Of a stretch of 64,000 nucleotides of DNA, positions 508 to 32,291 are shown piece by piece. The notes under the pieces are model-generated. The model did not search any database. It was not told where the DNA came from and saw nothing but the letters and a program-made list of their open reading frames with translations. Both the position numbers and the translations under genes were made by a program. Where the stretch lies: positions 62,001 to 126,000 of the forward strand of contig NIVC01002956.1 of NCBI GenBank assembly GCA_002269645.1. The letters run 5' to 3'. The DNA is from Macrostomum lignano. Its lineage: Eukaryota. Numbering within the stretch: the stretch's first letter is position 1; each line of letters begins with the position of its first letter.

Positions 508-509
508 CG

Positions 510-1884: not shown

Positions 1885-1942
1885 GGCAGATTTGAAATTG
1901 CTGCTTGGCACCTCCGGTGCCAAGCACAATTTCTTATCTGCC
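1885..1942. repeat. Hairpin: ~26-bp imperfect inverted repeat with 5-nt loop (ctccg), built from the shared GTGCCAAGCACAATTTC motif
   Basis: aggcagatttgaaattgctgcttggcac (1885-1911) pairs with gtgccaagcacaatttcttatctgcct (from 1917). Confidence 0.85.
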
Positions 1943-2070
1943 TCGCCTCACCTCAGCCGCCTACTAATTCTAGTTATAGTACACTGTAGTAGTTGTAGTG
2001 TGCACCTACTTTTGTTCTTTTAACACTCTAGTAGCAATAGTAGCTGTAGTGCTAGCACAATCACGGCAAG

Positions 2071-2183
2071 GTGCCTAACACAATTCCCCTAAATTAATAG
2101 CCGGTGAGTAGTGCTGTCTGTCAGACAATACAGTTGTGCTGCGCTTAGCTACGCGTATATTTAACGGGAATTGTGCTGGGCAC
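2071..2183. repeat. Second inverted pair of the same motif
   Basis: gtgcctaacacaattccc (2071-2088) vs gggaattgtgctgggcac (2166-2183); 16/18 complementary. Confidence 0.8.
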
Positions 2184-2425
2184 TGTGCCGCGATTGTGCT
2201 ATCTCCCATCCCATTGTGTGCTTCTGTTATCTGCTCTAATTGAATGTCTATATTTATATATACAACGTTTACATTGTTATATTAGCTACTGTGTCATATG
2301 TCTCGCTCGCTTTTTTTATTATAGCAGCCACATTATGCAATGCAATAATCTTATAGTCTATAGTGTTTCTATACAGTCTTTTATAGCGTGCCCGCATATA
2401 CTCACCGCATCCCGCGATTACACGG

Positions 2426-2538
2426 CTGCCCGCTTTGCCTCCTTTTTCCGGATACAATGTACAGTCTACGACTGCCCAAATATACACTGTGTATGCCCGA
2501 ATTTACAACAGCGGGGCAAGTTTATTGACAAATTTTTT
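2426..2538. repeat. Conserved right-end block of YR unit 1
   Basis: ctgcccgct...tacactgtgtatgcccgaatttaca...gacaaatttttt is homologous to 20242-20377 (direct) and to 14125-14218 (inverted, 24/25 in the core). Confidence 0.75.
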
Positions 2539-2539
2539 C

Positions 2540-5268
2540 TATTCTTATTTTTTCTTAGAATTTTTTCTTGTAATGCTCACACCCATTCCCGCCGGGAAAA
2601 GTTTCTAAAGTACCACAGAGTTTCTACATAGACTTCACTTATACTTATTGACTGCCTGCGCGTAGAGTTTGCACAGAGATTTTCTGTTTCAAGCAAATAT
2701 ACATACATAGATTCAGACGCCAGTTTCGACTCTGATACTTCGTCGAGTCAGTATTCCACCGCTGATGAAACTTTCGAATGGTCTGAGGACGATGAGATGG
2801 ACATCGCTGAGAACAACGAGCAAGCCGGTGGGTGGCACATGGTTCAACCGAATGAGGACAACAGGCCATCAGCCCTACCCGATTTTCTCGGAACACCTGG
2901 CATCCGACCAGACTGGCAGCCTCCACCAACTGCTGATGGAAACGAAATGCTTTCCTAAAGCTTTTTTTTCAGACCAGTTGTTCGAAGACCTCAGCAATTG
3001 GACTAATGCTAAGGCTTGGAGAATTTTCAAGAAGCCGAAACAGAGGCTGCACTGCCGAAGCAAGTGTTGAAATGGCGGGACTCAACGACGGATGAAGTTC
3101 GTTAGTTGGAATCGTGCTTTTGATGGGTGTCGACAAGAAGCCGGAAATCGCCAACTACTGGTCAACCGATCCAGCGTTTCATTGCTCCCTTCTGGCCAAG
3201 CCATTCTCGCTCTCAAGAGACCGCTTCAAGCAGCTGCTGTCCTGCCTGCGTTTTTACAACTGCGCTGAGGCTTTAGGAGATGGCCCTCTGGCAAAGATGG
3301 AGCCCTTTCTGCACAGCGTAAAGCATCTGTGCAGCAACAATTACATGCCACGGCAGTGACTGTCGGTTGATGAGACACTCGTTTTGTACAAGGGCAGAGT
3401 TGCTTTTAAACAGTACATTCCAACAAAGAAAAGTAAATACGGAATTAAAATGTATTGTATCTGTGAGAGTGAGAGTGCGTACTTATGGAACTTCGTCGTC
3501 CACACATTCCCTGAGGTCAATAATCAGTTCGGTGAAGGCCTCGGGTGTCAGGACTTGACGATGAGTGAGAAGGTTGTTGCAGAACTGTGCCGCAGTTTGC
3601 TTAATCTTGGACACCACGTCTTGACCGACAGTTGGTTTAAGTCTCAGCGGCTGGCTACTTGGCTGTTGCAGCATGATACGCTGCTAACCGGAACAGTACG
3701 GAAAAACCGCGGTATCCCAGCTGAACTGCAAGCTGCCAACCTACATCCGAGTTCATCTGCATTCGCTCGCTCAGGGAACCTACTGGCTTGCAAATTTGTC
3801 GACAGGAAGCAGAGCGGCATAAAAACTGTGTATCTGCTAGATACAGCAGGAAAAGCTTATTGCATCCAGGTCCATCGTACCCGTCGTGGAGGTGCCGTGC
3901 AGGTGGTGCCGAAGCCTGTAAGTGTGTTAGCATACTGTGCCAGCATGGGTGGTGTTGACCATCTGGACGCTTCAATGCACCCTTACCTAGCCAATCGTAA
4001 GAGCATGCGCTGGTTCCACAAGCTTGGGTTCCACCTTTTCCTGATGCTTGTGAGAAATGCCTGGGTCATCTTCAAGCAATCGGGCGGCACAAAGACCTTC
4101 TTGCAGTTTATAAGGCTCGCAGTCAAATATCTGTTGGAGGACACTGGTGTTGCCAGGCGACGCGGTCGAATGCCAGATGGAGCAGCTGCCGGTGCTGTAG
4201 CAATGGAGCTGCTGCTCATTCTCCAAGCAAAGCTCCCAGACACAGGGACCAGGCTCGGCCACGCAAACGATGCCGAGTATGCTATGCGGCTGGCCAAGTG
4301 AAGAAGACAGTGTTTGTATGCGAAGCTTGCCCGGGAACGCCAGCACTCTGCCTTGGTGCTTGCTTCATGCAATTTCAAACCAATTAGGTCTGACGCCTGG
4401 CGATGTGTATTAGACAGTATAGAAAATATTGTAGTATCCACCCTTTCCGCAAATTTGCCTTTCTATTTTGACTTCATTTTGAATTGGTGCCACCACAGCC
4501 CCTGGTTACAGATAGTCCAGAAATTGTCCTGGTTACAGAAACTACTAATATGAGACGTAGGAATCAGAAAACAGTAGAAGAGGGTAGGGTCATGAGCACA
4601 GGGGTAGAGGTGAGGGAATTACAATAGGAAGGGGCGGATTCGCACAGTGATAACCGCAGGCGCAGAGACGGGGGAGGCAGGGGGTGTTAGAGATGGCGAG
4701 GATTCGCAATCAATCCAGGGACCCGGTCTCTCAGCTCCTAGACCTCAGTCCTAGCACCAAGGCCCCTTGAAATAAAATAATATATTTGTTGCATTATCGT
4801 GGATAGAAATTACATTATTCCGTATTAATTTGGAGTTATAATAAATTTAGATGCTTGTTGTTTTGTATTACCTGTTTCTTTCCAGTTTTCTAAAAGTTTT
4901 CTAAAATCAACTCTACAGAAAATGACGTGACAGCGTGACAATTGTGACAGCTTCCCTCCATTTTTGACCACTCCAGTTAAAAAAATGACCCCACTTCACT
5001 ATGTTCTAATATAATTTAAGTCGTTAACTTTTAAACAAAGAAAAATATATGAGTAATTGAAATTACTTTGTTTTGTTACAGTCTATCTTTTCTAAGTGCG
5101 TTTTCACTATCTTATTGGCCACTACTTGACCCGATTTCGGGCCACATCAGTCCAGAACGGGTGTGCTAATTTTGCTGGTTTTTTGGCCATAGATATAAAA
5201 AAATTCCCCGTTGGCTTTGGGTGTTGAGCCATGACCCGAATTTGGGCCATCCGTCAGCTCATGGTTAA
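2540..5268 (+). mobile_element. piggyBac-family DNA transposon, defective; right end ...TGG|TTAA at 5264-5268, left TIR not found
   Basis: Contains the transposase remnant; subterminal palindromic repeats gacccgatttcggg (~5129) and gacccgaatttggg (~5233); TTAA at 5265-5268. The left boundary is approximate. Confidence 0.65.
2710..4387 (+). pseudogene. piggyBac transposase pseudogene (stops and frameshifts)
   Basis: SRDRFKQLL, SVDETLVLYKG, KYGIK, TDSWF, GTVRKNR, MGGVDHLD; the C-terminal Cys-rich domain RCRVC...VCEAC...LCLGACF is in another frame, ending at TAG 4385-4387; in-frame TGA at 3357-3359. Confidence 0.92.
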
Positions 5269-5311
5269 TGGGATAGCGCATTTCATATTAGGGACTATAA
5301 CTAGTCTTTAG

Positions 5312-5365
5312 TTATACATTAATATACAATGTATTAATGTATAAATAATGTATTAATATACATTA
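5312..5365. repeat. AT-rich palindromes: perfect 13-bp arms with 7-nt spacer, followed by an 8-bp-arm palindrome
   Basis: ttatacattaata-tacaatg-tattaatgtataa (5312-5344); taatgtat-taat-atacatta (5346-5365). Confidence 0.85.
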
Positions 5366-5493
5366 AGTTTATAGGTTAATGTATATAAACTTAAGCTTCC
5401 CCCTTCTAGTAGAAGCAGAGCAGCAGTCTTTATGGTTAGATCGCAGAAGAATAGCGCATCGTCTCACACAGTTCCAGCAGCAGCATCGTGAGC

Positions 5494-7945
5494 ATGTTCG
5501 ACGACGACGACGACGAGATAATGTTAAGTGTGGAAGAGCAGCTCGAGCTCGAAGAACAAGTTGCTGCTGAAGAGCGGCAGGCGGAGCAACTGCAGATGGA
5601 AGCTGCCGCTGCTGTTGCTACTTGTCATGAGGAGGAGTTGGAAGCTGCCGCTGCTGTTGCTACTTGTCATGAGAAGGAGTTGGAAACTGCCGCTGCTGTT
5701 ACTACTTTTCATGAGGAGCAGCAACCCAGTCGCCGGCGGATGCTATTAGAAGATGTCAGCACGCCGCAGACGAGCAGCGCAACGCCCTCTCGGCGCATCA
5801 TAGCCAATGAGACGCCGGAACCAAGCCAGCAGCGCGGCTTGCTTAACAAGCTGCCGCGATTAATTGTCTACAGCAGCGGTAGCGACGACGAACAGCAGCA
5901 GCATCCTGCTGACCACGTCGCCGGCTGCGGCGACCAGCCGCCGACTCTGCAGTTTATTCCGAAGGCGTCGCCCTCATTCCATACTACTGACTCTGCTGCC
6001 GCTGCTGCTCAAGCGTCACCGAAGCCGCACCTTCTACGGCAGCCTAGGATCGGCCCGTGCGGCATCGGCGCGCCCTGGCGCTTCACCACTCGCCCTGCTG
6101 CTCCTACTGCTGCCTTCCGATTCATGACGCCGACAGCCTCACCGAGACCTCGGTCGAGCCGCCCGCCGACGACGTTCTACCCGAGAGGTAGGTTACGTGC
6201 ATTTCGCGCTCACACTTTTGCTCATGCTACATTCTCTCATATTACAGTAGTATCATTTTCACATTGTTGTTTCCCGACGACACAGGAGCCACCGCCGCAG
6301 CCGTACCGCAGTCGAGTGCTACGCAGCGCGAGCGGGCTTTGGCCTCTGGCTACGAGCTGGCGGCCAGGGAGATGGAGGCGACAGCTAAATATAACCTCGC
6401 AGAGACGACCTGCCCGGCCGGCGAGATCCCACTGTTCCACGAAGAGGGGGAGGAACGGCAGCAGCAGCCGGCTAGCACCTCGCCGAAGGGAACGAGCTCG
6501 CGCCTTCTGGCATCGTCCGTGTCGCTGCATCCCAGCGACACCATACCAAACGACATAATGTTTTCGGCTAATGCGAGCCGGCGTTCGCATCGTGCAATGT
6601 CGGTGATTCAGCTGTACTACGTCAAGAACGCGCCCCAGATGAAGCTGATGATCAACGGCACCTGGAGCGGCGACTTCGCGACACAGTTTGCCATAGGTGA
6701 GTGAGTGAGTGTTTGCGTCGTTTCACAAGTGTCTGAAAAACTCATAACAATTATCTTCTACGTAGAACATGCGATTTTAAGAAACTCTTTAACCCATCCC
6801 CCAACGCCACCACAACAAACAACAACTACTACTACTGTATGTAATAAGGCCTGGCAGATAACGAATTTATGCTGACTCCCGCGCACATGACTGACGCGTA
6901 CGCCCCGACTCCATCTTGCCCTGTGGACAAGACACGATCGCTGTTGATATTTTTGCGATCCAATGCCATGCACAATTCCTTCTTCGCGTCTGGCTCCAGC
7001 CTGCACACCTTTGCGGTGCAGGGATGGACATGCGCCGAGATCAGGAGCGTGCGCTCAGCAGCTGCCGAAATATGACGGGTGACCATGCACGACCCCACAG
7101 CCGCCATCACCGAAATCGACGACGCTTGTCTGTCCCGCGTTGTCCAACTGTACAGATGGGCTATGTCATATCCGCTGGGGAGTATGGCACCGCGACCAGA
7201 CGACCCCCATCTCGTCTGCGGTAATCCACTGCTTTTGAAGCAGACCATGGATTACTTTACAACGGTGCAACAGATGCGCAGAATTCGTGCCGAAGAGCAC
7301 GGCGTGTCACTGCTCCCCAGCACCATTGTCTGGCCGAGTATGTGCGGGGCATGTCACCCTCTGCCTGTACAATGCATGCAGGTGCCTCCACGCGGCGACA
7401 CAGCCGCTTCAAATACGGATCAGCCGGGGTGCAGCAATGTGGCAACACACCGCATCGCGCTAGGTGGAAGCTGCGCGATTCAGCAGGCAATCTGCACAGC
7501 GATGCGGCAGACTGTAGTTGTGCCCTCAATCCTGTACCTATGGGGTGCCAGTGGAGTGGGCAAATCAGCAATGGTGGGCCTGCATTTTGGTCGTGAGACC
7601 GTATTCACTCCGAACCTTGACGAGGGTTTTGCCTTCGACGGTCTGCGCCTGGGCATTCATAGGTGTCTGTTCTTTGATGAGCTAAGCGTCTCGCAGGCCT
7701 CCTCGCAGCAGCTGCTTCTGCTGCTCAATCGCGATAAATTTACCATCAACGCCAAGCACAAGGCCCTCATTCTGACTGAATGGAGCGGCCCGGTGATGCT
7801 CGCTGGCCATGTCCCTCCCGCCGATCTGCCCATAGACTTTGTCAGGCGGGTCAACTCCGGCGGCCAGTGTATTCACGTGAAGCACGACATATTCCGGTGC
7901 ACCGGCTGCCAGCTGCAGGATGATGCTCGCGCAGAGTCTGATTAG
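5494..7945 (+). pseudogene. Three-exon gene encoding an acidic N-terminus plus a CRESS-virus Rep-like SF3 helicase; one in-frame TGA (7073-7075). Exons 5494-6187, 6286-6696, 6849-7945
   Basis: Walker A LYLWGASGVGKS, AFDG, Walker B CLFFDE, B' LLLLLNRDKFTINAKHK, motif-C-like WSGPVMLAGHVPP, Arg finger FVRRV; two phase-1 GT-AG introns (gtaggt at 6188, gtgagt at 6697) join three ORFs in frame. Confidence 0.75.
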
Positions 7946-8346
7946 AGCTTGATTAGCTGGATTGATGAACAACGGGGCAGATAAACGATGACGCACTGCT
8001 TTCCCTGCCCTTAAATATTCCCAAATCCCGATTCCCCTCCTAGCAATCAAGCCGGCCTTATATGCATTAGTAGTGGATTTTGTTGTTGTTGCTAGGCTGC
8101 TCACATAGTGCAGGATGCGCCGTAGAACGCAGGTAAACACAAAGCTAGGTAATATTACTCGTGCGTCAGCAACGCAACAAAGTTCACATTTGGCCGTTCA
8201 AGTTCCAACAATTTCGTGTTACAGCTATTATACGAGCCACTGCAGGGACAGTAAAAATTCAACTATTCTGCAGCTTTATGTGCACCTTTTGCTGCTTTAG
8301 CAGGCGCGAGCATTAGAGCCTTAACGCTACTGTAACTAAGGATAAA

Positions 8347-8445
8347 GTGCCAGACAAAACATCGGAAAAGTGCTACATTCATTTTCATACATTTCCGTAA
8401 GGCGTGTTGGCACAGTAGCACTATCGCGAAATTGTGCTTAGCAAC
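8347..8445. repeat. Inverted pair of the shared ~30-bp motif downstream of the Rep-like gene
   Basis: gtgccagacaaaacatcggaaaagtgctac (8347-8376) and gtagcactatcgcgaaattgtgcttagcaac (8415-8445); each about 23/30 identical to copies at 19990 and 19851. Confidence 0.75.
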
Positions 8446-8853
8446 ATTCCCATAAAAAGATAAATGGCACATCCAAGCCATGCAGAGGCGATTAGTAGCT
8501 GTAACAGTTATACTTTCCCTTTGTTTTTGTGTGTTTTTTAGTTATCGCTTTTAAAGGAAGGAATAGCACCAGTTCGTCTTGTTTCATACTTAAAGGGGTA
8601 TTTTTGGGGCATTTCCATTCTCGTGGGTTTCTATATTGCAATATTGTTGTTGTCTGCAGTTTTGTTGTGGCTAATGTGCCGCGTATATACAATTTTACAG
8701 TCTCAATACCGGCGGTAGTAAGTATTAATCTCGTTGCAATTTTCGACACCCTCTTTTTGAAATATATGAAACAAGCAATCTACATCTCCTTTTGAAAACC
8801 ACCTTTTGGAACTACTAAACTGTATACTTTGAGTATCGATTCAATACTTCGTT

Positions 8854-9040
8854 GTAGACTCACTCAGCTAGCGTGCTGCTTTTAGGGGGGGGGGTTAACC
8901 ATAAACTATAGACCCCGGACCGTCCCTCTTCTCTACTTCGTTAGACACACTCAGTGTACTGTTTTAGTAGGGGGGGGGTTTAAACCATAGACTATGCATC
9001 GATCGCAGACTCTAGACCCAGACCGTTCCCCTCCTCAACC
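8854..9040. repeat. Imperfect tandem duplication of ~85-95 bp with poly-G
   Basis: agac(t/a)cactcag...ttt..gggggggg.ttaaccata.actat...agacc.c.gaccgt.ccct occurs twice. Confidence 0.7.
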
Positions 9041-9226
9041 ACTGCAGTTCATTCTTAAAGAGGTCCAGCATTTCTGTACCCCGCCCGCTGCAAGCAACCA
9101 ACAACTCGTATAATCCACATAATTTCTGCGGCTTTAGCAGGCGCGAACATTAGAGCCTTTGACTTAACTTAACTTAACTTTAACTTAAGGATAAAGTGCC
9201 ACATTCATATCCATACATTTCCGCAA

Positions 9227-9273
9227 ATGTTCAGCTTTCTGCGCCTCCTCTTTGGCGACGACGCCGCAGCTGA

Positions 9274-9317
<44 letters not shown>

Positions 9318-12300
9318 CGAAGATAAGCTGGGCGATGCGGGCGATCTGCTCTTCGCACGAGCGTCCTTTGCGGAAACCGGCTTGGACTTTGCTGAGAGTG
9401 CCCTTGGATTCCAGCAGGAAGTTCAGCCTTTGGTGCACCAGCCGTTCCGCGACCTTGGCAATGCAGCTGGTGAGGGCGACAGGGCGATACGAACCCGGGT
9501 CGTCAGCCGGTTTGCCGCGTTTCGGGATCGGAATGATAATCGCCCTGCGCCACTGGTGGGGGCAGTGTCCGCTGAGCCAGGCCTTGTTGATCAGGTCAAG
9601 TAGTCGCTGCTCGGTCCGTTCGGGGAGACGCTTGAGCATCTCGTTGGACACTCCGTCCGGGCCGGGGCTCTTCCTGGATTTCAGCGACCTCAGGGCCTGC
9701 TTAAGTTCCACGGCGGAGAAGGCGCCACAGATCTGTTGTTTGTGGTCGGGCTCGCAGCAGCGCGCTTTGATGGCGGCATAGGCGCATCTGTTGACCCCGC
9801 GGTCCGACCTCCTGCGCTCCACGCGAGACACGTCCGCGTACAGGGTGCAGAAGGCATCCGCTTTCTCCTTGTCCGTGACCGCAGTCCTCTGCCGGCGGTA
9901 TCTGGTCTCATCGGCCGGGATGGCAAGGGCCGCGTTGGGGGGAGGCGGCGGGGGTTCGCCCCTCATCGCCCGGGCCAGACCGAAAAGGTCGCTGTTGACG
10001 GACAACTCCGCGACTCGTTCGTCCCAGAAGCGGAGCTTCTCGGCCTTGATCGGGCTGGAAGAGACTCCCGCGCTTAGAGCGATCCTCTGTTTACTCGACT
10101 TCAGCAGAGCCTACGACAAGGTGTGGCGGAAGTCTCTGATCTGCAAGCTCGAGAAGCTGGGAGTCCCCGCCTGCGTCCTGCGCTGGATCAACAGCTTTCT
10201 CAGCGACAGGAGAGCGCGCGTCCGATTCGGCAATAGCCTCAGCAGAGAGCGCATCTTCCGGGAAGGCCTGCCCCAAGGCTCGGTGATCGCCCCTCTGCTT
10301 TGGCTGGTCTACGTCAACGACCTGCCAACTGCCATCGCGGAAGCATCGCCGGAAGCCGAGATCAGTCTGTATGCCGACGACTCGGCCATCCTGGCGCGCC
10401 ATACGGACCTCGAAAGCTGCGGGCACATCGTGCAACCGGCTCTGGACTCCGTGGCCCGCTGGTGCGACCAGAACAAGGTCGTGCTCAGCACCGGGAAGTG
10501 CAGTTACAGCACTTTCACGCTGAGCCCCAACGAGAACCGCGGCAAGACCAGAGTCGAACTCAACATCGGCGGCAGCGAGCTTCGTTTCGAGCCCAACCCG
10601 GTCTTCCTCGGCGTCAAATTCGACGACCACCTCGGGTTCGCGGAGCACGCCAATGATACCCGCCGCCGCATGGCTGCCAGAAGACGCCCACTGCAGGCCA
10701 TCGCACACCGGCAAACGGGTGCGACGCAGAGCATCCTCCGCACCGTTTACGTTGCCACTATCCGAGCTGTGGCGGACTACGGCAGCGGCGTATGGCTCGC
10801 GGGAGCGGCACCGAGCACCAGGCTCCTAGTCGAGCGCCAGCAGAACGCATGCGCGCGCCTGATTACTGGCTGCATATCCACGGCCCGCACTGAAAATCTC
10901 CTTAGCATCGCCGAGCTGCCGCCCCTCAGCCACGTGGCCATCGAACGCGCGTGCACGCTGAGGGAGCGGATGGCTCGCCTCCCGGACGGATCGCCATCGC
11001 AGAGCATCGCGACAGCGGTCAACACCCCGCGCCTCAAAAATCGCGCCTTCGAAGCCGCCAACCGGCCGAACCAGGCCGAGGGGGTCAATCAGCGCCTCCC
11101 GGACAGGGACCTTGACGTCCGACGTCGCTTCCGCGGCTGCTGGAGGCGCGCGGCGCGGGAGCTAGAATGTTGCGAGGTACTGGACAGGACGCCCCGGGCC
11201 CACCGACCCCTTGGCCCCCCACCGTGGGAAGTGGCCGAGGCCGGCCGCGTCCAGTTCGATGTCTCGCTCAGCAAGGTTATCAGCCGCGACATGCCGGCGG
11301 CCATGAAAGCCAACATAGCCAGGCAAATCGTCGGCCCACTGGAGACCTCCGGACACGTCATCTGGACGGACGGATCCGCGGCTGGCGGTTTCACGAACGG
11401 AGGCGGTGCGGCGATCGCCCAGTGGCTTCCGGACAACGACGCCCGCCTCGTCGCGGCTGGCGCGCTCTGCAGCAGCTTTACCACAGAACTCTGCGCCATC
11501 AGGGAGGCCTTAGACATCGCCTACCACCCGGCGCCGCCCACGGGCGCTATAACTATCGCCACGGACAGCCTCAGCGCCATCCAGGCGCTCAGCGCCGGAC
11601 CCCTGTGCCAGCAAAACTCAGTTGCCGCGGACTGCTGGAGTAAACTCCTCAACCTGATCGCCATGGACCGCCCTGTTCACTTCGCTTGGGTGCCATCCCA
11701 CTGCGGGGTCGCCGGCAACGAGGCGGCCGACCGCGCCGCCGCCAACGCGGCCGGGCTCGACCAACAGGCGGTGCCGATCGAGCTTGACGCGGCAAGGGCA
11801 GCCGCTCGTCGCTCTCGCAGAAAGCTGGACGCCAGAATCCTGCCGCCGAGACTGCAGCCGCCGACGAGCCTCCCTAGACGTCTCCAGGTCCTGGTCAACC
11901 AGCTCCGGTCCGGCGCCAGCACCATCAACTTTAGCACCAGACACCGCCTGGGCTTGGAACAGTCCCCCGCCTGCCCCGATTGCGGCGCGGAGGACTCGGC
12001 TGAACATCTGCTCCTCCACTGCCCCCGCGGTGACCACTTCCGGAGAAGAAGCGGCCTGGCCCCGAGCGACCTGATGGGGTCCCCGGAGGCCATCGTCAGA
12101 CTATTACGCAGCATGGGGCGGCTCCCCTCGGGGTCCACGCCCCCCTCCAGATCGGCCTAGCCGGAACGGAGGCGCCCCGAAGAAGAAGAAGAAGAAGAAG
12201 AAGAAGCAGCAGCATCCACCAGCGAGCACGAGTCTGAAGCAGCTGCTCCACCAATCGCCGCCGCCGCTGAACAGGTATATTCGGCTAGTTTCTGTTGGCC

Positions 12301-12885
12301 ACCAATACCAGCTGCTGGCGTGCCTTGTAGCCAGCGTAACAGCCCGCTGATTTCGCCGCCGAACAGGTCGGCGGTAATAATGATTCCAACAACAGGTGAG
12401 CACGCCTTTGCCTGGAAATAATTGTGCGTGCGTGCGTGTGCGGGACAATTTTATATTCGTGCGCTCTTTCCACGTATCAGAACCTATATATATTGTTTCC
12501 TCGTCTAATAAACTCAACAATAGGCAAAACAGCAGTGCCTGCTGCTACGGATGCTGCCTCCTCGGCTACAGCTGCTGCAGGTGCATCCGCCGCCAGCGCC
12601 GATGCCAGCAACAGCAGCAGCAGCAGCAAGAAGCGAGTGTGTCCTGCAGATGGATGTTCCGTTATCATGCGAATGGATGCACTTAAACGCCACTTTACGG
12701 CGAAGCATGCTGCCTGGTGCCTGGCTCGCCCCGTGAGCGCCAATGTAAAGGACACGGCTGCCGGCTGGTCTACAAAGCAGCGCGTGGACTGGCACTGGCG
12801 CAGCCTGATCCTTAGAAGTGAGCAGACCATCAGCTCGAAGAAGCATGCAAGAACCGAAACGTATTGCGAGCAATGCGCGTTGTAG
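9227..12885 (+). pseudogene. Small two-exon C2H2 zinc-finger gene disrupted by a LINE in its poly-Ala (CAG) tract. Exon 1: 9227-9316 + 12206-12395; exon 2: 12524-12885
   Basis: ATG 9227 MFSFLRLLFGDDAAADP(A)n resumes after the LINE as AAASTSEHESE...; phase-1 GT(12396)-AG(12523) intron; CPADGCSVIMRMDALKRHFTAKH zinc finger. Confidence 0.65.
9317..12205 (+). mobile_element. Non-LTR retrotransposon (I-group, RT + RNase H + CCHC), 5'-truncated with a twin-priming inversion: 9317-10050 inverted, 10051-12205 forward, (GAA)n tail
   Basis: Minus strand has KSPGPDG, YRPVALTS, QAGFRKGRS...QLIF; plus strand continues GLEETPALRAILCLLDFSRAYDKV, GLPQGS, YADD, RNase H WTDGS/TDS/WVPSHCG, CPDC..EDSAEHLLLHC; tail at 12179-12205; CAG runs on both flanks. 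Confidence 0.93.
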
Positions 12886-13029
12886 TGTGAGCATCTTTTA
12901 CGATAGCCTTGTATTCTATTAGTTAGGTTTTGCATTATTGTTATTGAATTATTATTTTGCTTTAGTTTAGTCATACGTTTTTGGTGTACTTTTTCCTTGT
13001 TAGTTAGAATCAATTTTGCGTAAACAGGC

Positions 13030-13260
13030 TAGACGTCAGACGCCATTTGTGACTCAGCGGAGGGTTGAGTTTGTCTGCGAACCCCAGCTTTGTGCGGCCA
13101 GCCAATCAGAACCGGCCTGGACCCTGGCACGCGGCAAGTTTCAATTCTACCCGGCGCCGCGGGCACAGTGCAATTCGGCTTAAGCAAGCGGCCGGCCAGA
13201 CGACCACCACCCGGCTTGAGGGGGTTTTGAGGGGTTGCGACTCTGACTATATATGAAAGT
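13030..13260 (+). promoter_or_regulatory. Cluster of Pol II promoter-like motifs
   Basis: agacgtca (CRE-like), cgccattt (YY1-like), tgactca (AP-1), ccaatcag (CCAAT), tatatatgaaag (TATA-like) within ~230 bp. Confidence 0.35.
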
Positions 13261-14124
13261 GTGTTTTGGCAATCGGATCTCGCCTTCTTCTCGCTCCCTT
13301 TCCCCGGTTTTGTCTTGTCCAGTTCCCGGCCGGTGGCCCGATTTCTCCTCTCTTGTTGGTTCGCGCTTTGAGGCGCCTGAATTCATCACCCCCGGTCCAT
13401 ATTTTTTTGTTCCCGCCCAACCGCAGTAGTCTTGTGGCGTAACGTCTACGGCAAATTTCTGTCTGAAGTCGTCGCTATCAAGCGCGGTTAGATAGAGACT
13501 GTCGGATCTGATCAAGTACGCGGCCTCGACCCCGAGGGCCTCAGTGTTACACTGAAGGGCAGTGCCGATAGAATTTAGTCGGTACTCCGTTGAACGGTCG
13601 GTTCGGCAGGGCTCTCGTTTGAGTGTAGGTTCTGGCTTAGGCCAGGGGTTAGGAGTCTTCTCCGTGGTCGTGTTCGGTGCCTCCTTCTTCTTCTTCAAGC
13701 TGAGATCCGCTTGTCAGTGCGTAATATAATCATTATTATTAATCGTTACTATTCGTTATCATCAGTCTAATTATCTGCGCCGCGAAATTGCTTGAATCCT
13801 GTAACTTGAGTAATCAAATTAAATCGTCTAGCCAATTATCAGTTGTATCATATAGGATTATCACTCTCTAAATCTTTTGGTTTGTGTTCCCTCGTGTTCT
13901 TTCTTTTCTTGTACTGTACCTGCGGCTATTGGAGAAAGACTGGTAGGACTCGCCGACCGGCGATAGGCGATTAGGATTAATAGCTTTAAAATCTCCAAAC
14001 GCTCCAAGTAGGTTTGTCTAGGGCCTAAATAATTGCTTACCGTGCATGCTATTATCTAATTGCCTATTTATCACAGCGTGCTGGTTTAGGGATAGCGACA
14101 AGCACCAGGTGAGCAGTTGCGACG

Positions 14125-14236
14125 TGTAAATTCGGGCATACACTGTGTACCTGCGGGCTGCCATAGACGCATATTGACTCGGAATCGGGATAAGGAGCAG
14201 TCGTGTATTAGCGGGCAGTTGTGTATTAGCGAGCAG
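14125..14236. repeat. Left inverted end block upstream of YR copy 2
   Basis: tgtaaattcgggcatacactgtgta (14125-14149) is the reverse complement of 2483-2507 (24/25); gtgtattagcgggcag (14203-14218) is the reverse complement of 20242-20257 (15/16), with a second tandem copy at 14221. Confidence 0.8.
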
Positions 14237-14311
14237 CTGTGTTAGGGCCATATACTACTCAGCATATAGCCATTCTATCCTTTAATAACTCGACAGGCCA
14301 AGCACCGAAAG

Positions 14312-15282
14312 ATGGAATCCGCCGCCGCCGCAGCCAAAGCAACACCAGCGTCTGCCGACCCGCCGCCAAACGAGGCGTCCGCCATCTCCGCCGCCACTGG
14401 CATCGACGCTGCCACCGCTGCTGCCGAAAAGAAGAAACGCGGCTCCCTGTCCGCGCCATTCAGACCCGATTCGCCAGCCGTGCTGCAGCTAAGAGTGCTG
14501 AGATCGCTATACTACGACCCTTCGACAGGTGTTCACGATCAAAACATCGACGGCTTTGAGGAGAAGTGGAAAGCAATCGCCGACCTGGTACTATCAAGCT
14601 TTGAGAAGATGGCGAAAGTACCATATTCGGCCTCCACAGCCGTGGACGGTGAAAATTACGACTGCAGCGATGACCAAGATGCCGCAGCGACTCTTCCGCC
14701 GCCGCCGCCGCCGCCGCCGCCGCAGCCAATAGCTGAGGCTTCTGCATGCTCGGAGTCGCCGACTACTCAGCCGCAGCCTCCAAGAGACTTTCTATTCTGT
14801 CTGGCTGACCCAAATGCCGCCGCAGACGCTCTACGCCAGACTAGTAGCAGCATCGGCACGGTCGCTGATTAAATGTATGCGCTTTATTATTCTCTACATC
14901 GAAGACGATCCCGGGCATCGCCTGCTGGTTATTCGGCGTCTTCGCCTACCAGCCGATATCGCCGACAATCTGGAGGAGCGCTGTTTGCTATTTAAAAAGC
15001 GCCTGCGAGTGCTCCGGATGCAACACGACTTTTATCGTAAGCTTGACGCCCCTGAACACCACGCGAAAAAGCAGAAAAAGCTGCTGACCAGCGAAGAATG
15101 GCGCCTCGTGCTTGCCGACTACAGCAAGCTCGTAGAGCAATTCGGTTACGGCGGTAGCAGTTCTCGTGCTCGACTACTGGGGAGCGCCGCAGACCAAGTC
15201 GTTAGGGCTGCTGCAGACGAAATTGGCGATGCCGCCGCCGCCGCCGCCGCCGCCGCAGCCGACGATGACGCAAATGCTTCAG

Positions 15283-15316
<34 letters not shown>

Positions 15317-18300
15317 TAGCGGTAACACCAGCGCAGACGACGGCGAGGACACCGACGACGATGCTTTGTCCGCGTCGCAGCAGTCGATGATCCAGCTGCG
15401 CAATAGATTTGCTCTCCACGCCACTGTGCATCATCCGATACCAACACTAGAGGAGAGGAGCTTCTGGCCCTCATCTCTAACACAAACCTCATGCTCTGCA
15501 ACCGCGGCAGCACTCCTACCTTTAATAATGGCAGATGGACCGAGGTCCTCGACGCCACACTCGTTACCCCAAGACTCTTTGACAGAGTTGAGGAGTGGAG
15601 AGTCTGGTCTGAGGAGCCCTCCCTGTCTGACCACTGCTTTATCGCCTTTAACATCGCGGATACTAAAACCCAGTCTCCGATCACTTGGAGACGCAATATC
15701 CGCAACACTGATTGGGCGGCCTACAAGGCTGCCCTTGATCTGCACCTGCAGGAACTCACGGACTTACGTCCGATTGAGACCTGCGAGGATGTGGATCATA
15801 TGGCTGAGACGCTGACAGGTTGCATTATTGCAGCCTACGAAGCGGCTTGTCCTGCTCGCGCCTACAAAGGCAAGACCTCGGCGCCGTGGTGGAACCCGGA
15901 CCTGGGGAAACTCAGGCGGAAGGCCAAAAGCCTTCATCGCCGTGTCATGAAGACCGGAAACCCGGAGGACATGGAGCTTTTCCGGCAAGCCTCCCGCAAT
16001 TTCAAATCTGAAGTGCGCAAGGCCAAGGAATGTAAGTGGCGCCAATTCTGCAATGAATTGGATCAAGACAGACCTACTTCTAGGCTTGTCAAGGCCCTTA
16101 CAATGGACAAAATGTCCAAATTAGCCATGATAAAAAAGATGATGGCTCTCTTACTAAAGACCCTGAAGAAGTGCTTCAGCATATGCTTAGCACATTCTTC
16201 CCGAGGGTACCTACTGCTAGACCGGAGTCCAACCATTCGATGGATGGAGCCACCCTAGCGGCGGGCATTGTCACTGAAGACCTAATCGCTCGTGCGGTCA
16301 GAACCTTCAAACCCTTCAAATCTCCTGGACCTGATGGTATCTACCCTGTTCTCCTTCGTGAAGCAGCCAAGATACCCTCGTTCCTGAGACTCACCCGCAA
16401 TCTTATGCGGGCCTCTATCCAGCTGGGATACGTTCCCAAATGCTGGACTGAAGCTCGGGTAGTCTTTATTCCCAAACCTGGGAAGGGTGACTACCAAAGC
16501 GTCAAGGCCTTCCGGCCTATTAGCTTAACGTCAGCAATGCTTAAGCTCACTGAGAGGCTTATTCTCTGGCGGCTGCTCTCCTGCGAGCTGACAGCGATGC
16601 CCCTCAGCAATAATCAGCACGCCTTCCGTACCGGGAGGTCGACTGACAGCGCCCTGCATGCGATTGTCGAGAAGATTGAACGGGCGGTACTGGGTGACGG
16701 TTACGCCCTGGCTCTCTTTCTTGACATTGTTGGCGCCTTCGACAACGTTATCTTTGAAGCGTTTCAGAGGCCCTTCAAAATCGCAAAGCTCATGCTACCC
16801 TCATACGGTGGATCATGTACATGATCTCCAACCGTACGGTCACTGCCCAACTTCTTGGGCAAACTGCCTCCACAGAGTCTGTAAGGGTGGACCCCAAGGC
16901 GGAGTCCTCACCCCGACGCTCTGGAACCTGGTCATGGACGCTCTTCTGAGTGACTCCCGACCCGACCCCGTCTTCAAAGTCGGGTATGCTGATGACGTCA
17001 CGGCCATTGTGGCAGGACCGTCTCCCAGCACGCTCAGGGATCTGATGCAGAGCTTTATCCGCAAAGCAGAATCCTGGGCCAATGACAATGGTCTGGAACT
17101 CTCTGAGCCCAAAACCGTTGCCATTATGTTTACCAGCAGACTACGCTGGAACATACGTCCTCTGCAGCTCTACGGCAGAGATATTGCCTTCGCGCACCAG
17201 ACCAGATGTCTCGGGGTCACACTTGACCACCGGCTCAACTGGTCCTACCACGTGAAAGCAAAAGCCAAGCGTGCCTCAGCCATCCTGGCCCAGCTCCGAC
17301 GAGCACTTGGCACTTCTTGGGGTCTATCCCCAAAGCGGCTTTGGTGGATCTATACTTCCGTAGTTAGACCTGCCATTACGTACGCCTCGGTTGTCTGGGT
17401 TAGCGCTACCCAGGTCAAAAGCCATGCAGACCTGCTCAACACGATCCAAGGCAGAGCGTGTAGGCTCATCTGCAACGCCACCAGGTCCACGCCCTTTGCT
17501 GGCATGGGGGCCTTCCTTAATCTACCGCCTCTTGACCTCTTCGTCAGGGGTGAGGCGGCTAGAACGACGCGGCGTCTAATTGATGCCGGCGTCAAATTCA
17601 TTTACATGAGAGCACCTGCTAAGCGGAACCTTGTCCCGCATAGCGACCTGAGCCTCAACTTTCTCAACGAGTGTCAGGCCAATCGCGTCTTCACCGATCG
17701 CATTGCCTCAACGCTCAACCTGAGACAGCGCTACTCCGTAGCTATCGACTCGCGCGATAACATCAATGACCAATGGAACCTTGGTGAGCTTCATTGTTAC
17801 ACCGACGGTTCTAAGCAGTCAGCCAACACCGGCTTTGGTGTTGGAATCTTTCTGAACGGGAAGGTCATCGCTACCCACGCTCAATACACTGGGGTCAACT
17901 CCAGTGATTTTCAAAATGAAGTTCTGGCCATCAGCTCCTGCACTGCAGAGCTTCTCGCCACTGGCGTTACTGGTAAGAACATCATTTTCCATTCGGACAG
18001 CCAAGCCGCCTTGCACGCCATCAGTGGCTGCAGTACCAACTCTGCAACAGTCCTCGACTGTATCAAACTCCTCAACGTGTTGGGTTCCACCAACAAAATT
18101 ACCCTTAAGTGGGTTCCGGGGCATGTGGGGATCCGAGGAAATGAGTTGGCTGACACCCTTGCAAAAGTTGGTGCCTCCGGCTCCTCTCTCGGTCCCGAAC
18201 CCCTTGTCCCGATTCCTGGCTGTGTCATCGACTCGCGCATCAAAGCGTGGATCAGGACCCAGCACCGCTCGACTTGGGCGAACTGCACTACCTGCAGGCA

Positions 18301-19535
18301 ATCCAGAGGCGCTGTCCCTCAGCCCTCTCACCAGCTCCGGAAGCTCCTCTTGCGCCTCTCGCGCAGAGACATCCGGGCTGCCACCATGAACCTCTCTGGT
18401 CACGGCTGCTTCTCCAGGCACCAGCACCTGCAGGGCAACGCCACCAACGCCACCTGTAGTTTCTGCAACTCAGGTGACGAAACCGCTGAGCATTTCGTCA
18501 GCATCTGTCCCGCCTTCACGCGGGCCAGACTCACTTACCTCGGGCCACACACATCTATTACTGAAGCGTGCAAACCCGAAAACTTTAATCAGCTCATGCG
18601 CTACCTTCGGGCCACCCGCAGGGCTGAACTCTCCTTTCCAGAGAGCACTATAGCTGCTGGCGACACTGGGGGACCTCCCTGGGCGGCGCCAACCCTCCGT
18701 CCATAGCGACGCGTCGGCTGTTCAGGGACTAGCGGAATGGGCGCCCGCGCCTTCCCGCTGTGTCCCCTCCGGGACAGCCCTGCAGCTGCAGCGTCCTCTG
18801 CCTGCCGACGTCCTTTGTTAACCTGCTGCTCAAGTGGCGACACAGCGCGGGCTTCGGCGCCAGCCCAGATGGCGGCGACGTTTTTGTGTTTTGCACACGA
18901 AACGGAACCAAAATGTCGTTCCGTTGCAGTGTTGGGTCGCCACGGCGTCGGTCCAAACGTGTTCCGCAGCTCAACACAGGACGTTGTCATGTCCAACAAC
19001 CCGGACCTAATAAATTAGATGGCGTCACTGTATGAGACATCGCCGGCAATGATCATGCGGCACTACGCGTCGAACGCTCTGTTGGCATCTCGCTCCGACA
19101 TGCAAGCCGTCGTCCAGGGTATGATTGAGCAGCGGGCCTCAACATCGGTAGCATCGCTGCGGCGCCAGCGGCTGTGGACGAGGCGCCGCCGAATGCTGCT
19201 GAACCTTGGCAGCAGCAAAGCCGGGAAAGACGGCAGCGAAAAATAGCGCCGGCAGTGGTGGCGACGGCGGCGCTTACAGCCCATCGCAGCCGATTACGTC
19301 AACAGAGCGACAGCTCCAGGAGGCCACTAAACGAAAGGCGCTAGTGATGCCGCCGCAACTCACATCTAAACGGAAAGCTGCGGCCAACGCGACGTGCACC
19401 TTGATGCGACTGGACGACAACGACTATGATGACGCGGCGGAGAGCAGCATGGCGGCTACTGCAGCGACGTCTGACGTCAGAGTCAGATGCAGCGGCCGTA
19501 AGAGAGTTAAATTGTGCACGCCAGCTTCTGTTTGA
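14312..19535 (+). pseudogene. Tyrosine recombinase-like gene (YR copy 2) with N-terminal region, split by a LINE, frameshifted
   Basis: QLRNRFALHATVHHPI | LINE | CSVLCLPTSFVNLLLKWR...VFVFCTRNGTKMS; GPNVFRSSTQDVVMSNNPDL*MASLYETSPAMIMRHY; C-terminal PQLTSKRKAA...KLCTPASV aligns with copy 1; frameshifts near 14870 and 18920, TAG at 19016-19018. Confidence 0.8.
15441..18786 (+). mobile_element. Non-LTR retrotransposon (APE-RT-RNaseH-CCHC, LOA/I-group-like), 5'-truncated inside the endonuclease, two frameshifts; 3' boundary uncertain
   Basis: NTRGEELL..NRGSTPTF..LSDH; KSPGPDG, FRPISLTS, QHAFRTGRST, LDIVGAFD, PQGGVLTPTLW, YADD, YTDGSK, SDSQAAL, KWVPGHVGIRGNELAD, CSFCNSGDETAEHFVSIC. Confidence 0.92.
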
Positions 19536-19748
19536 GACATAGCTACTTTGTGCATGTAGCGGCATAGGGAACTGTTTATATATTAGCTCTATATGCCATA
19601 TAGATACTAGCTACTTTTGATTGAGTACCTACTAATCAGTCCGCAGCGCGACCCCTTCGCTAGCCTGTAAGCCAAATGTTAACGAACTAAAATACTAGCA
19701 TTGGTGTATTATAGCACTCAGATATGAAAAGAAATAGCTGACTCGAAA

Positions 19749-20020
19749 GTGCCAAGCACAATTTCGAGTGCTTGCTTGCTAGCAATTATTCCATCTATGT
19801 ATTACATTAAATTGCGTGTACGAGTTACTTGTGCTTATTCATGTACATAGGTAGCACTATTTCGGAATTGTTCTAGGCACATTTCCTATTAAATTATATT
19901 AATTGGAATGAAAACTCTGCAATTGTTTCTATGATATGGCTGGCTGCTGCCGCCGCCGCCGCCGTCCGTGTTTTATCTTTTAGGGAGAAGTGCCTAACAT
20001 AATTTCGAAATAGTGCTACC
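19749..20020. repeat. Three copies (forward, reverse, forward) of the shared motif downstream of YR copy 2
   Basis: gtgccaagcacaatttcg (19749), gtagcactatttcggaattgttctaggcac (19851-19880), gtgcctaacataatttcgaaatagtgctacc (19990-20020). Confidence 0.85.
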
Positions 20021-20237
20021 TGTGTCAATCATATTTATATATATTTATTATTAATGTTTCCGCTTCGCTTGTTCAAGTATATAAAATGGTTTCATTATCT
20101 ACTAGCTAACCAATCGTTGTTTTATCTGTTGTTGTTTGCTGCATCCCTATTTTTACAATTTACTATTCTTTAGGATTAATGTCAGAAGCTAAACAGGCCA
20201 GTATATTTATCTTACCCTCTCTATACACCTTTATATA

Positions 20238-20377
20238 TACACTGCCCGCTTATACACACTGTTTATTGTTTTTAATGAACATCATAAAGTTAGGCCAGTA
20301 CAGTTGCCTAACTCCGCAAATACACTGTGTCTGTCCGATTATACACGGCTTTAACAAGTGTATAGACAATTTTTTTG
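20238..20377. repeat. Conserved right-end block of YR unit 2
   Basis: tacagt...caaatacactgtgtctgtccgattatacac...acaagtgtatagacaattttttt aligns with 2460-2538; similarity stops at the T-run. Confidence 0.75.
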
Positions 20378-26918: not shown

Positions 26919-30203
<3,285 letters not shown>

Positions 30204-32088: not shown

Positions 32089-32291
32089 CAGGGACTACTC
32101 GAACACCGGGACGGGAAACTTGGAATTCTTTACGAGGCTGGTCTTTTAGCAGCAGTAGAAAATAACCATAGACAACAAAGTAACACAGCATCGCTCTATG
32201 AAAATAAGCCAGCCAGCCTCGTCTTAGCTGCTAAAAGACCAGCCTCGTAAAAAATTTCTAGTTTCCCGTCCCGGTGTTTGAGTAGTCCCTG
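32089..32291. mobile_element. hAT-like MITE, 203 bp, ~65-bp TIRs, 8-bp TSD
   Basis: cagggactactc(g/a)aacaccgggacgggaaact... TIRs; TSD gtccagct at 32081-32088 and 32292-32299. Confidence 0.9.

Follow-up and report, generated by a model that had tools for sequence, protein, structure and literature searches.

Dyad-symmetric arms in inverted pairs behind recombinase-like genes: candidate binding or recombination sites of an orphan mobile element

Introduction

Several inverted sites lie near a recombinase gene both in the FLP/FRT repeats of the 2-micron plasmid and in the R64 shufflon with its recombinase Rci. Integron genes are each followed by an attC site, an imperfect inverted repeat whose structure is kept better than its sequence and whose ligand is a tyrosine recombinase. 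Subterminal repetitive regions are a feature of En/Spm (CACTA) and Ac/Ds. As for eukaryotic transposons mobilised by a tyrosine recombinase (YR), we know of essentially no DNA that the enzyme recognises. Typical core sites of tyrosine recombinases have arms of 11-13 bp and a centre of 6-8 bp (PMC3212892). Cryptons, which are eukaryotic DNA transposons encoding only a tyrosine recombinase, have short direct repeats at their termini and lack terminal inverted or long direct repeats, and those of animals are reported to lack terminal repeats, direct or inverted, as well as recognisable internal repeats (PMC3212892). Elements that HUH endonucleases mobilise generally carry hairpins and palindromes (PMC10288648).

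In the 64-kb stretch of DNA analysed here (the window), short conserved arms lie next to two recombinase-like genes. They are like loxP, FRT and dif in that well-preserved arms hold two inverted 7-10-nt elements with a TTCGAA-type centre, adjoin a gene with weak recombinase signals and occur in inverted pairs; here, however, the elements are shorter, a third, partial half-site is present, there are 3-4 sites per unit, one catalytic His position appears unconserved and the host genome is of animal type. As in the 2-micron and R64 systems, several inverted sites cluster on one flank of the gene, no more than a few hundred bases from it, but the segments between them are 5-100 nt long, non-coding and unconserved. 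We saw no sign that these segments have been inverted; the spacers align in neither orientation. Imperfect inverted repeats behind several same-strand genes and a putative tyrosine-recombinase ligand recall attC, whereas in our locus conservation extends to the arm sequence itself, the host is a eukaryote, and only one non-recombinase gene carries a copy, a partial one. With En/Spm and Ac/Ds the locus shares short direct and inverted motif repeats within a few hundred bases of the end and two motif classes, the second of which forms arrays that face opposite ways on either side of the gene; unlike in those elements, no DDE transposase was found and the first motif class is at one side only. 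Finally, a single recombinase-like gene without a reverse transcriptase of its own, a unit of ~3 kb and an animal-type genome are Crypton-like, but this unit has a palindromic module in its interior as well as a 14-nt motif in inverted arrays. Neither Pfam nor three protein homolog searches revealed similarity to Crypton recombinases or DUF3504, and we rejected Crypton membership on the lack of recombinase similarity and on the inverted 14-nt arrays flanking the gene.

Results

Nine arms form three clusters

A motif of 30 nt had been reported from this window at ten positions, in inverted pairs behind the genes termed YR1 and YR2 and a 'Rep-like' gene. Each of the ten positions holds a copy. 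The repeated unit is an arm of ~36 nt (n = 9), found in three clusters with a common arm order, A (1886-2203), B (8340-8451) and C (19746-20021):

1884-1943, no strand assigned: cluster A, inverted pair 1; arms 1886-1913 (+) and 1916-1942 (-), strands as in the arm model; 26-bp stem, 3-5 nt loop
2051-2203, no strand assigned: cluster A, inverted pair 2; arms 2051-2088 (+) and 2166-2203 (-); spacer of ~77 nt
8340-8451, no strand assigned: cluster B; arms 8340-8376 (-) and 8415-8451 (+), 38 nt between them
9124-9228, plus strand: degenerate paralog of 8287-8402; holds the truncated copy at 9196 and lacks 23 nt of the arm
19746-20021, no strand assigned: cluster C; arms 19746-19779 (-), 19849-19886 (+) and 19983-20021 (-)

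The 30-nt pattern, with up to three mismatches, matched three times where none was expected, and a 15-nt core, with up to two mismatches, matched eight times (0.81 expected; at most 3 in any of 100 shuffles), with all but one of these inside clusters A-C. All seven exact matches of the half-site pattern GCACWATTYC (10 nt) fell within 1924-20016. When the nine arms were built into a profile and searched with nhmmer --max, the same arms and their own reverse-strand echoes were the only finds, the next match being 6964-6980 at E=0.85. Elsewhere in the window, over ~44 kb, the half-site scan and the profile search both gave zero arms. The recurrence of the motif in inverted pairs behind the YR genes is thus borne out, with enrichment and clustering far above chance. 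The truncated copy at 9196 is present as well, and can be described more closely as part of the degenerate paralog at 9124-9228, which is cut off by the start of a LINE. An ATG marks the end of this copy and may be the start codon of a downstream zinc-finger-like ORF.

Arm anatomy and folding

Most arms hold two inverted half-sites of 7-10 nt with a TTCGAA-type centre of ~6 nt between them, and a third, partial half-site. The 30-mer is therefore a composite of two inverted half-sites and a third partial one: its copies are real, and its composite nature explains why the copy at 2071, for example, was listed in a shifted register. Internal dyad symmetry is clear in 5/9 arms, and inverted half-sites abut at 19854-19873 (19854-19863 and 19864-19873), 19997-20016 and 8418-8437. 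Two inverted elements around a centre are the layout of a recombinase core site of the lox/FRT/dif type, and in the same five of nine arms this layout is clear. Moreover, the reverse-strand echoes of the profile fall at the same places as the arms, showing that the sequence is kept in both orientations.

Folding was far above shuffles in three of the four inverted pairs. The 26-bp-stem hairpin pointed out earlier was confirmed at 1884-1943 (-26.9 kcal/mol, z=-10), and the long inverted repeats 2053-2201 and 19845-20025 reached z=-6.1 and z=-6.9, respectively; the pair at 8347-8444, behind the 'Rep-like' ORF, folded no better than shuffles (z=-1.4). Partner arms are alike at 26/29 positions in pair 1 of cluster A, at 33/40 in pair 2, and at 32/40 in the last two arms of cluster C, which form a 42-nt inverted repeat with a ~96-nt spacer. 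The two arms of cluster B correspond in order to the middle two of clusters A and C, and they pair poorly (23/39). The loops and spacers between paired arms (3-5, 38, 77 and 96 nt) are unalignable. A search of Rfam gave no match.

The YR genes and their product

The modules lie 210-400 nt past the stop codons of three same-strand ORFs, two of them the YR genes:

119-1534, plus strand: 'YR1' ORF; C-terminal ~290 codons (from about 660) conserved with YR2
14312-19535, plus strand: 'YR2', a paralog of YR1, interrupted by a single non-LTR retrotransposon nested in it and further broken by one in-frame stop and three or more frameshifts
15491-18706, plus strand: ORFs belonging to the non-LTR retrotransposon nested in YR2; they encode endonuclease, reverse transcriptase and RNase H domains

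The upstream part of YR1 is of low complexity and the window begins there, so its annotated start is provisional; one of the frameshifts in YR2, in the unconserved N-terminal part, is uncertain. We considered whether the retrotransposon belongs to the YR unit and rejected this, as YR1 is continuous across the corresponding region. A DIRS/Ngaro-type retroelement was likewise rejected, since the only reverse transcriptase and RNase H in YR2 are those of the nested element, which come with an AP-endonuclease domain.

The YR gene product is probably a protein of the tyrosine-recombinase fold, judging from signals that are weak but concordant. The sole match in PHROGs was phrog_1 integrase (E=0.012, sub-threshold) and the sole match in NCBIfam was XerC (E=0.059), which scored 12.7 bits where the cut-off is 335. 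With hhalign, a comparison with XerC/XerD/Cre/lambda Int gave a probability of 54% (E=1.2e-4), the match running colinearly through the Arg-I helix and the Lys hairpin, and one with Cre alone gave no match; BLASTP against Cre was colinear at E=0.12. All of these matches are mutually colinear, every one of them is below curated thresholds, and Pfam gave no match even at E<=10. An AlphaFold2 model from the paralog alignment (pLDDT 34) was too poor for a fold search. No homologs of the protein were found among 1.8-5.8 billion proteins, nor did anything related turn up beyond the window, hence its orphan status. Candidates for Arg I, Lys, Arg II and Tyr could be mapped by extrapolating offsets from the XerC and hhalign matched ranges, together with inspection, outside the tool alignments; so mapped, Arg II and Tyr are 33 residues apart (32 in XerC). 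The His II position, mapped in the same way, is Thr and His/Trp III is not identifiable, and the protein may for this reason be inactive.

Conservation between loci

Judged by sequence comparison, clusters A and C are homologous and lie in the 3' non-coding DNA of two old paralogs descended from one gene. For YR1 against YR2, dS is about 1 (silent sites saturated) and dN/dS is 0.19. Nevertheless a core is identical at 17/17 positions (1917-1933 and 19749-19765), where 17 identical bases in a row are expected at ~1e-6 per position at such divergence. The sequence-only reading had described the surrounding 3' sequence as otherwise diverged, and correctly so: the spacers are unalignable between loci, and spacers and gaps between arms show likeness at shuffle level in either orientation. 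Partner arms within a locus are 80-90% alike, as against 54-64% for orthologous arms between loci, and six columns show joint change in both partner arms, a pattern that in this sample (2-3 loci, one window) gene conversion between arms could mimic. The inverted pairs of A and C occupy matching positions in two paralogous flanks, which argues against a MITE or foldback element. Nor does the other 44 kb of the window hold a copy such as a MITE would leave, and the sequence of clusters A and C has no target-site duplications around the inverted repeats.

A second motif delimits the unit

Inverted arrays of a second, 14-nt motif flank the YR-like gene and delimit a unit of about 3 kb, which has both of its sides inside the window in one copy only:

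2389-2508, plus strand: second-motif array, 4 copies, downstream of cluster A
14124-14235, minus strand: second-motif array, 4 copies, inverted; the YR2 start codon follows after about 80 nt
20243-20346, plus strand: second-motif array, 3 copies, downstream of cluster C

The array at 14124-14235 matches 2389-2507 at 71% over 119 nt. Homology between the two units stops near 2540, marking the right edge of the YR1 unit, and near 20378 in the YR2 unit. The arm sites are internal, 340-360 nt short of the right edge, and confined to one side of the gene. This is unlike the position expected for the crossover sites of an integrated element.

The 'Rep-like' ORF and cluster B

7079-7945, plus strand: 'Rep-like' ORF, P-loop NTPase-like; Walker A and Walker B by inspection

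The label 'Rep-like' is unsupported, only a generic Walker A/B being present. Upstream ORF segments (5488-6704) are in other frames, implying introns or breaks, and inspection of the three forward frames over 5400-8200 showed no HUH or catalytic Tyr motif. Pfam, PHROGs and NCBIfam held no Rep match; the matches below cut-off are generic P-loop ones (AAA_16, AFG1/ZapE, Hda and a transposition ATPase). By inspection, the Walker A-B spacing would fit an SF3 helicase. The AlphaFold2 model has a pLDDT of 33 and protein searches found no homologs. At the sequence level the proposed link of this gene to the YR genes is real, 8407-8464 and 19972-20028 sharing 78% identity over 59 nt, and cluster B arms are 68-72% like cluster C arms; the copy itself is partial and poorly pairing, and is not assignable to the 'Rep-like' ORF over the intergenic region or the downstream ORF. 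We infer that cluster B is a partial, decaying copy of the YR-unit module, with no evidence that the P-loop ORF uses it. Near the two best modules, A and C, there is no P-loop remnant.

Discussion

Our tentative preference is that an orphan YR-like mobile element uses the arms as binding sites or as core-type recombination sites. Of the earlier proposals, 'binding or recombination arms' appears to fit the anatomy best, because the arms are dyad-symmetric, their sequence is kept between genes with saturated silent sites, and a YR-like gene is their neighbour. The arms would be cis-acting, dyad-symmetric protein-binding sites grouped in a conserved ~300-bp module; this module would sit in the 3' non-coding part of a DNA unit of ~3 kb, so far uncharacterised, that moves or once moved. 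Their most likely ligand would be the unit's own protein, bound as dimers, and the inverted pairs could juxtapose two sites for synapsis, recombination or control of the element. If this is true, the arms are a concrete candidate for the recognition sequence of the recombinase of such a eukaryotic transposon, and an orphan family joins the catalogue of eukaryotic mobile elements; if it is wrong, what we describe is an ordinary block of conserved non-coding DNA from a decaying repeat, within a region rich in transposons. A bolder version, which we regard as most improbable, is a new kind of recombinase-encoding element in an animal-type genome with its own multi-site recombination module, possibly shared cassette-like with other genes, the P-loop ORF among them, as an address through which a single recombinase would handle several units; such inverted core-type sites by a gene would be likened to the yeast 2-micron plasmid and bacterial shufflons.

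Hairpins in a 3' UTR, sense or antisense, could instead act at the RNA level, in 3'-end formation, in stability or as dsRNA feeding small-RNA silencing, which we consider rather doubtful. The modules do lie 210-400 nt behind the stop codons of three same-strand ORFs, three of four inverted pairs fold far above shuffles and six columns co-vary between partner arms. Yet the idea of RNA 3' structures, advanced earlier, meets evidence on both sides, as the sequence itself, beyond pairing, is conserved and in both orientations. Cluster B keeps its sequence while its fold is lost, and the internal dyad symmetry of the arms is more than a long hairpin requires; arm mismatches have no clear G-U bias on either strand (our own count, few sites), and Rfam was without a match. 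It is unlikely that the arms have no present function and are the remains of an old foldback or palindromic insertion, kept alike by hairpin-templated repair or gene conversion and copied passively. Gene conversion would also make partner arms more alike than orthologous ones, the copies in cluster B and at 9124-9228 are visibly decaying, and YR2 is a broken gene; against this, the 17/17 core and the arm order have survived between paralogs whose silent sites are saturated, within-locus conversion between arms cannot account for conservation between loci, target-site duplications around the inverted repeats are lacking and the rest of the window has zero copies.

The binding or recombination reading has also to be set against two proposals that tie the arms to other proteins. 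An origin with hairpins and iterons recognised by the 'Rep-like' product, for rolling-circle replication or transposition, would account for the partial module behind the P-loop ORF, but we hold it to be extremely improbable. The replication iterons suggested earlier are unsupported: no HUH or catalytic Tyr motif was seen in the 5400-8200 frames, the only matches are generic P-loop ones, all below cut-offs, the ORF has neither homologs nor a usable structure model, loops and spacers are unconserved where a Rep origin would have a conserved loop, and both of the best modules are found behind recombinase-like genes, where no P-loop remnant is near. A cellular dimeric factor at promoter, insulator or silencer sites between genes is very unlikely, given that the host genes in the remaining 44 kb have no sites and that the unit's block of homology includes clusters A and C, although cluster B does lie between two ORFs and the 9124-9228 copy runs up to the ATG (possible start) of the zinc-finger-like ORF. 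A dispersed repeat in metagenome contigs of an unrelated eukaryote also contains the same 20-nt palindrome, but the number of metagenome matches is about the chance estimate for a degenerate 20-nt pattern in a collection of that size.

Recurrent arms in three clusters

The sequence-only reading had described a 30-nt motif recurring in inverted arrangements behind YR1 and YR2, two tyrosine-recombinase-like genes, and behind a 'Rep-like' ORF. The recurrence is real: three matches were found at three or fewer mismatches against none expected, and the 15-nt core gave eight matches at two or fewer mismatches against 0.81 expected. The 30-mer itself is not a single unit but a composite of half-sites, and for this reason some of the copies listed (e.g. 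2071) stood in a shifted register. The nine sites, hereafter arms, were aligned unmodified into a profile with which the window was searched, filters off. The profile recovers just the nine arms, plus weaker opposite-strand matches at the same places, which are echoes caused by the inverted half-sites within arms. The next-best site lies at 6964-6980 (E=0.85).

Arms found by the profile search (orientation on the profile model's strand)
Cluster A: 1886-1913, forward
Cluster A: 1916-1942, reverse
Cluster A: 2051-2088, forward, followed by a 77-nt spacer
Cluster A: 2166-2203, reverse
Cluster B: 8340-8376, reverse, followed by 38 nt
Cluster B: 8415-8451, forward
Cluster C: 19746-19779, reverse
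Cluster C: 19849-19886, forward, followed by a 96-nt spacer
Cluster C: 19983-20021, reverse

Arm order is common to the three clusters: A has four arms, B the middle two, and C is without the first, which has decayed. The best-kept arms consist of two abutting inverted half-sites with a centre of the TTCGAA or TTCGGA type (as at 19854-19863 and, on the opposite strand, 19864-19873), followed by a third, partial half-site. A 10-nt half-site pattern has seven exact matches in the window, all within 1924-20016 and none in the remaining ~44 kb. The hairpin with a 26-bp stem was confirmed (1884-1943, -26.9 kcal/mol, z=-10), as were long inverted repeats at 2053-2201 (z=-6.1) and 19845-20025 (z=-6.9); the pair at 8347-8444 folds no better than shuffled sequence (z=-1.4). 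On the minus strand, a half-site with one mismatch is also present within the final codons of each YR-like ORF (1504-1513 and 19508-19517), either as coding sequence that is conserved or as an additional site.

The YR-like genes and their unit

YR1 (ORF 119-1534) and YR2 (an interrupted gene, 14312-19535) are paralogs. With the gene pieces compared apart, pS is 0.56 and pN 0.17; since dS is ~1.0 and dN/dS 0.19, the YR-like gene is a real protein-coding gene present in two old copies. YR1 is uninterrupted over the conserved part. YR2 is interrupted in several ways. A single non-LTR retrotransposon is nested in it, whose ORFs (15491-18706) encode endonuclease, RT and RNase H; an exact look-up of the nested LINE's ORF returned no record. 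There are also three or more frameshifts, of which one is uncertain and falls in the unconserved N-terminal part, and one in-frame stop.

Between YR1 and YR2, the 3' flanks can be aligned only as islands, namely the arms, an array of a second, 14-nt motif (motif 2) and a short terminal stretch. Homology ends near 2540 and 20378, with unrelated sequence beyond on each side. Motif 2 has 11 matches in the window, all within three arrays.

Motif-2 arrays
2389-2508, plus strand
20243-20346, plus strand
14124-14235, minus strand, ~80 nt upstream of the YR2 start

From the point where flank homology stops and from the inverted motif-2 arrays, YR2 lies inside a ~3-kb unit (nested element excluded) bracketed by these arrays, and the arm module sits 340-360 nt inward of the unit's right edge. 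Elsewhere, a palindromic unit of 17-18 nt is present in two direct copies (5126-5143 and 5231-5248). They share an 8-nt core with motif 2 and lie 240-360 nt upstream of ORFs that come before the one at 7079-7945.

Constraint on the arms

An identical run of 17/17 bases joins 1917-1933 to 19749-19765; at the genes' silent-site divergence, 17 identical consecutive bases are expected about once per million positions. Spacers within pairs and gaps between pairs show no similarity across loci above that of shuffled sequence in either orientation, and an inversion of the spacers between loci was rejected on the same grounds. Conservation of the arms between loci calls for selection. Partner arms at the same locus are alike at 26/29, 33/40 and 32/40 positions, orthologous arms of A and C at 21-25/39, and in six columns both partner arms have changed jointly. 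This likeness within loci reflects either selection for symmetry or arm-to-arm conversion.

Identity of the YR-like protein

Neither Pfam nor a word-indexed protein search of 5.8 billion clusters gave a match or homolog for the YR-like domain, and DNA-level scans of metagenome and viral collections found no related loci. An exhaustive search of 1.84 billion representatives returned two matches; the one of the two that was examined (P0001) was rejected as a relative, being a spurious translated tandem repeat. AlphaFold2 models of the YR-like and P-loop proteins reached pLDDT 33-34, too poor for a fold search, and PDB sequence searches gave low-complexity or irrelevant matches only. The weak matches to the YR-like domain are nevertheless all to recombinases and are colinear. 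The sole PHROGs match is an integrase (E=0.012) and the sole NCBIfam match XerC (E=0.059); BLASTP aligned 118 residues with Cre, in a stretch that takes in both the Arg-I helix and the Lys hairpin (E=0.12), and hhalign, run against XerC, XerD, Cre and lambda Int aligned together, covered the same stretch (probability 54%, E=1.2e-4). When residue offsets were extrapolated from the colinear matches, candidates appeared for Arg I, Lys, Arg II and Tyr, and the second His position is Thr. The 'YR' label given on first reading draws weak, concordant support from these matches: the protein probably has a recombinase fold, and its activity as a recombinase is uncertain.

The P-loop ORF and cluster B

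The 'Rep-like' label found no support. In ORF 7079-7945 (plus strand) Walker A and B motifs were recognised by eye, database matches were to generic P-loop families only and all below cut-off, no HUH or Tyr motif was seen on inspection of the three forward frames and searches found no homologs; we therefore call it the P-loop ORF. The proposed link of this gene to the YR genes through the motif holds as sequence homology, which between the arms of clusters B and C extends past the motif (78% over 59 nt), but not as an assignment to the P-loop gene. Cluster B is partial and poorly paired, begins ~395 nt after the stop of the P-loop ORF, and has a degenerate paralog (9124-9228, matching 8287-8402) that abuts what may be the start of the following ORF. 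The copy listed as truncated at 9196 is real but belongs to this paralog, in which 23 nt of the arm are missing and at whose end a LINE begins. No remnant of the YR-like or P-loop gene was found elsewhere in the window, and the idea of a third recombinase copy, with cluster B for its tail, was rejected for want of a coding remnant.

Possible roles of the arms

The likeliest reading, judging from their layout, is that a dimeric protein would bind the arms as double-stranded DNA, the sites being set in inverted pairs. The obvious candidate ligand is the unit's own recombinase-like protein, which would bind them as a dimer. Clusters of sites beside a recombinase gene are common in prokaryotic and yeast systems. 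Recombinase core sites typically comprise two inverted elements flanking a ~6-nt centre (PMC3212892), a layout that the arms match. The arms are observed to be conserved, symmetric and adjacent to the gene; beyond that, we infer each step of the mechanism. Their position, internal and on one side only, argues against crossover sites of the integrated element, and a part in synapsis, in control or in recombining a free form is more plausible.

Less probably, the inverted pairs may act at the RNA level as hairpins. Three observations weaken this reading: arm sequence is conserved whichever way it is oriented, each arm has a dyad symmetry of its own, and cluster B retains the sequence without the fold. 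There was also no Rfam match. The 'replication iterons' first suggested, that is, arms as an origin of replication, find no support, no HUH or Tyr motif having been seen in the P-loop ORF. A MITE was rejected for this one window, where profile matches are confined to the clusters.

Placed among known elements, the module resembles clusters of recombinase core sites or the subterminal binding-site arrays of DNA transposons, and we class it with the cis-site modules of recombinase-type mobile elements. The YR-like element family is an orphan. A Crypton was rejected on the available tests, which found no similarity to Crypton recombinases or DUF3504; animal Cryptons are without inverted repeat arrays (PMC3212892), whereas the YR2 unit has them. 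A DIRS-like architecture was rejected too, the RT belonging to the nested LINE and nothing resembling an internal complementary region being found, and the unit is neither a Helitron nor a Replitron (PMC10288648).

The motif beyond the window

The 17-mer core has five single matches in viral contigs, judged consistent with chance for a 17-mer given the size of the collection, and the 20-nt arm palindrome occurs at 11 metagenome loci, by our estimate about the chance expectation. At five of the 11 (L007, L012, L013, L015 and L017) the palindrome lies in the middle of a dispersed repeat of ~100 bp from another eukaryote, rich in similar GCACAATTT-type motifs and carried on host-like contigs from three JGI metagenomes. 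TTAGGG-type repeats are present at one locus, and a VASt-domain exon at a second. Beyond the palindrome, the dispersed repeat and the window show no similarity in DNA or protein.

Genomic setting

G+C content is a mosaic across the window (32-66%), and the arm clusters are confined to its first 20 kb, which is rich in transposons. Domain matches identify three host-gene exons.

Host-gene exons
26919-27515, minus strand, Forkhead
35690-36262, minus strand, NHL-repeat
55737-56417, plus strand, SLC52 riboflavin transporter

Named relatives of the SLC52 exon are animal proteins, none more than 49% identical, and its top database match reaches only that value, which points to an animal of a sparsely sampled lineage. 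A search for tRNA genes found none.

The transposons are two non-LTR retrotransposons and the remnant of a piggyBac-type transposase. That remnant (2765-4301; DDE_Tnp_1_7, E=4e-34 over 3384-4301) lies immediately outside the YR1 unit, on its right. The 5' part of the retrotransposon at 9205-12206 is apparently inverted: the first RT motifs are in a minus-strand ORF (9205-10005), the remaining RT and the RNase H in a plus-strand ORF (9791-12160), with a (GAA)n tail at the end, the pattern expected under twin priming. Between this tail and the YR2 unit, ORF 12424-12885 has a C2H2-like zinc-finger pattern (C-x4-C ... H-x5-H) and may be the 'ZnF' gene of the first reading. ORF 20375-21121 begins at the exact point where homology of the YR2 unit stops, and shows a weak PHD-finger match and a glycine-rich GHGKG...DG motif, presumably one that occurs in transposase-like invertebrate proteins.

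Minisatellite arrays number more than a dozen. One, a 5-kb satellite at 42090-47129, has 157 copies of a 32-nt unit (92% matches), and its plus strand is strongly C-rich; at least 12 others, with periods of 15-64 nt, are spread over 24.5-57.2 kb. Inverted repeats at 32089-32291 (65-nt arms, 94%) and 51370-51657 (54-nt arms, 89%) bear no relation to the arm motif and may be small foldback elements.
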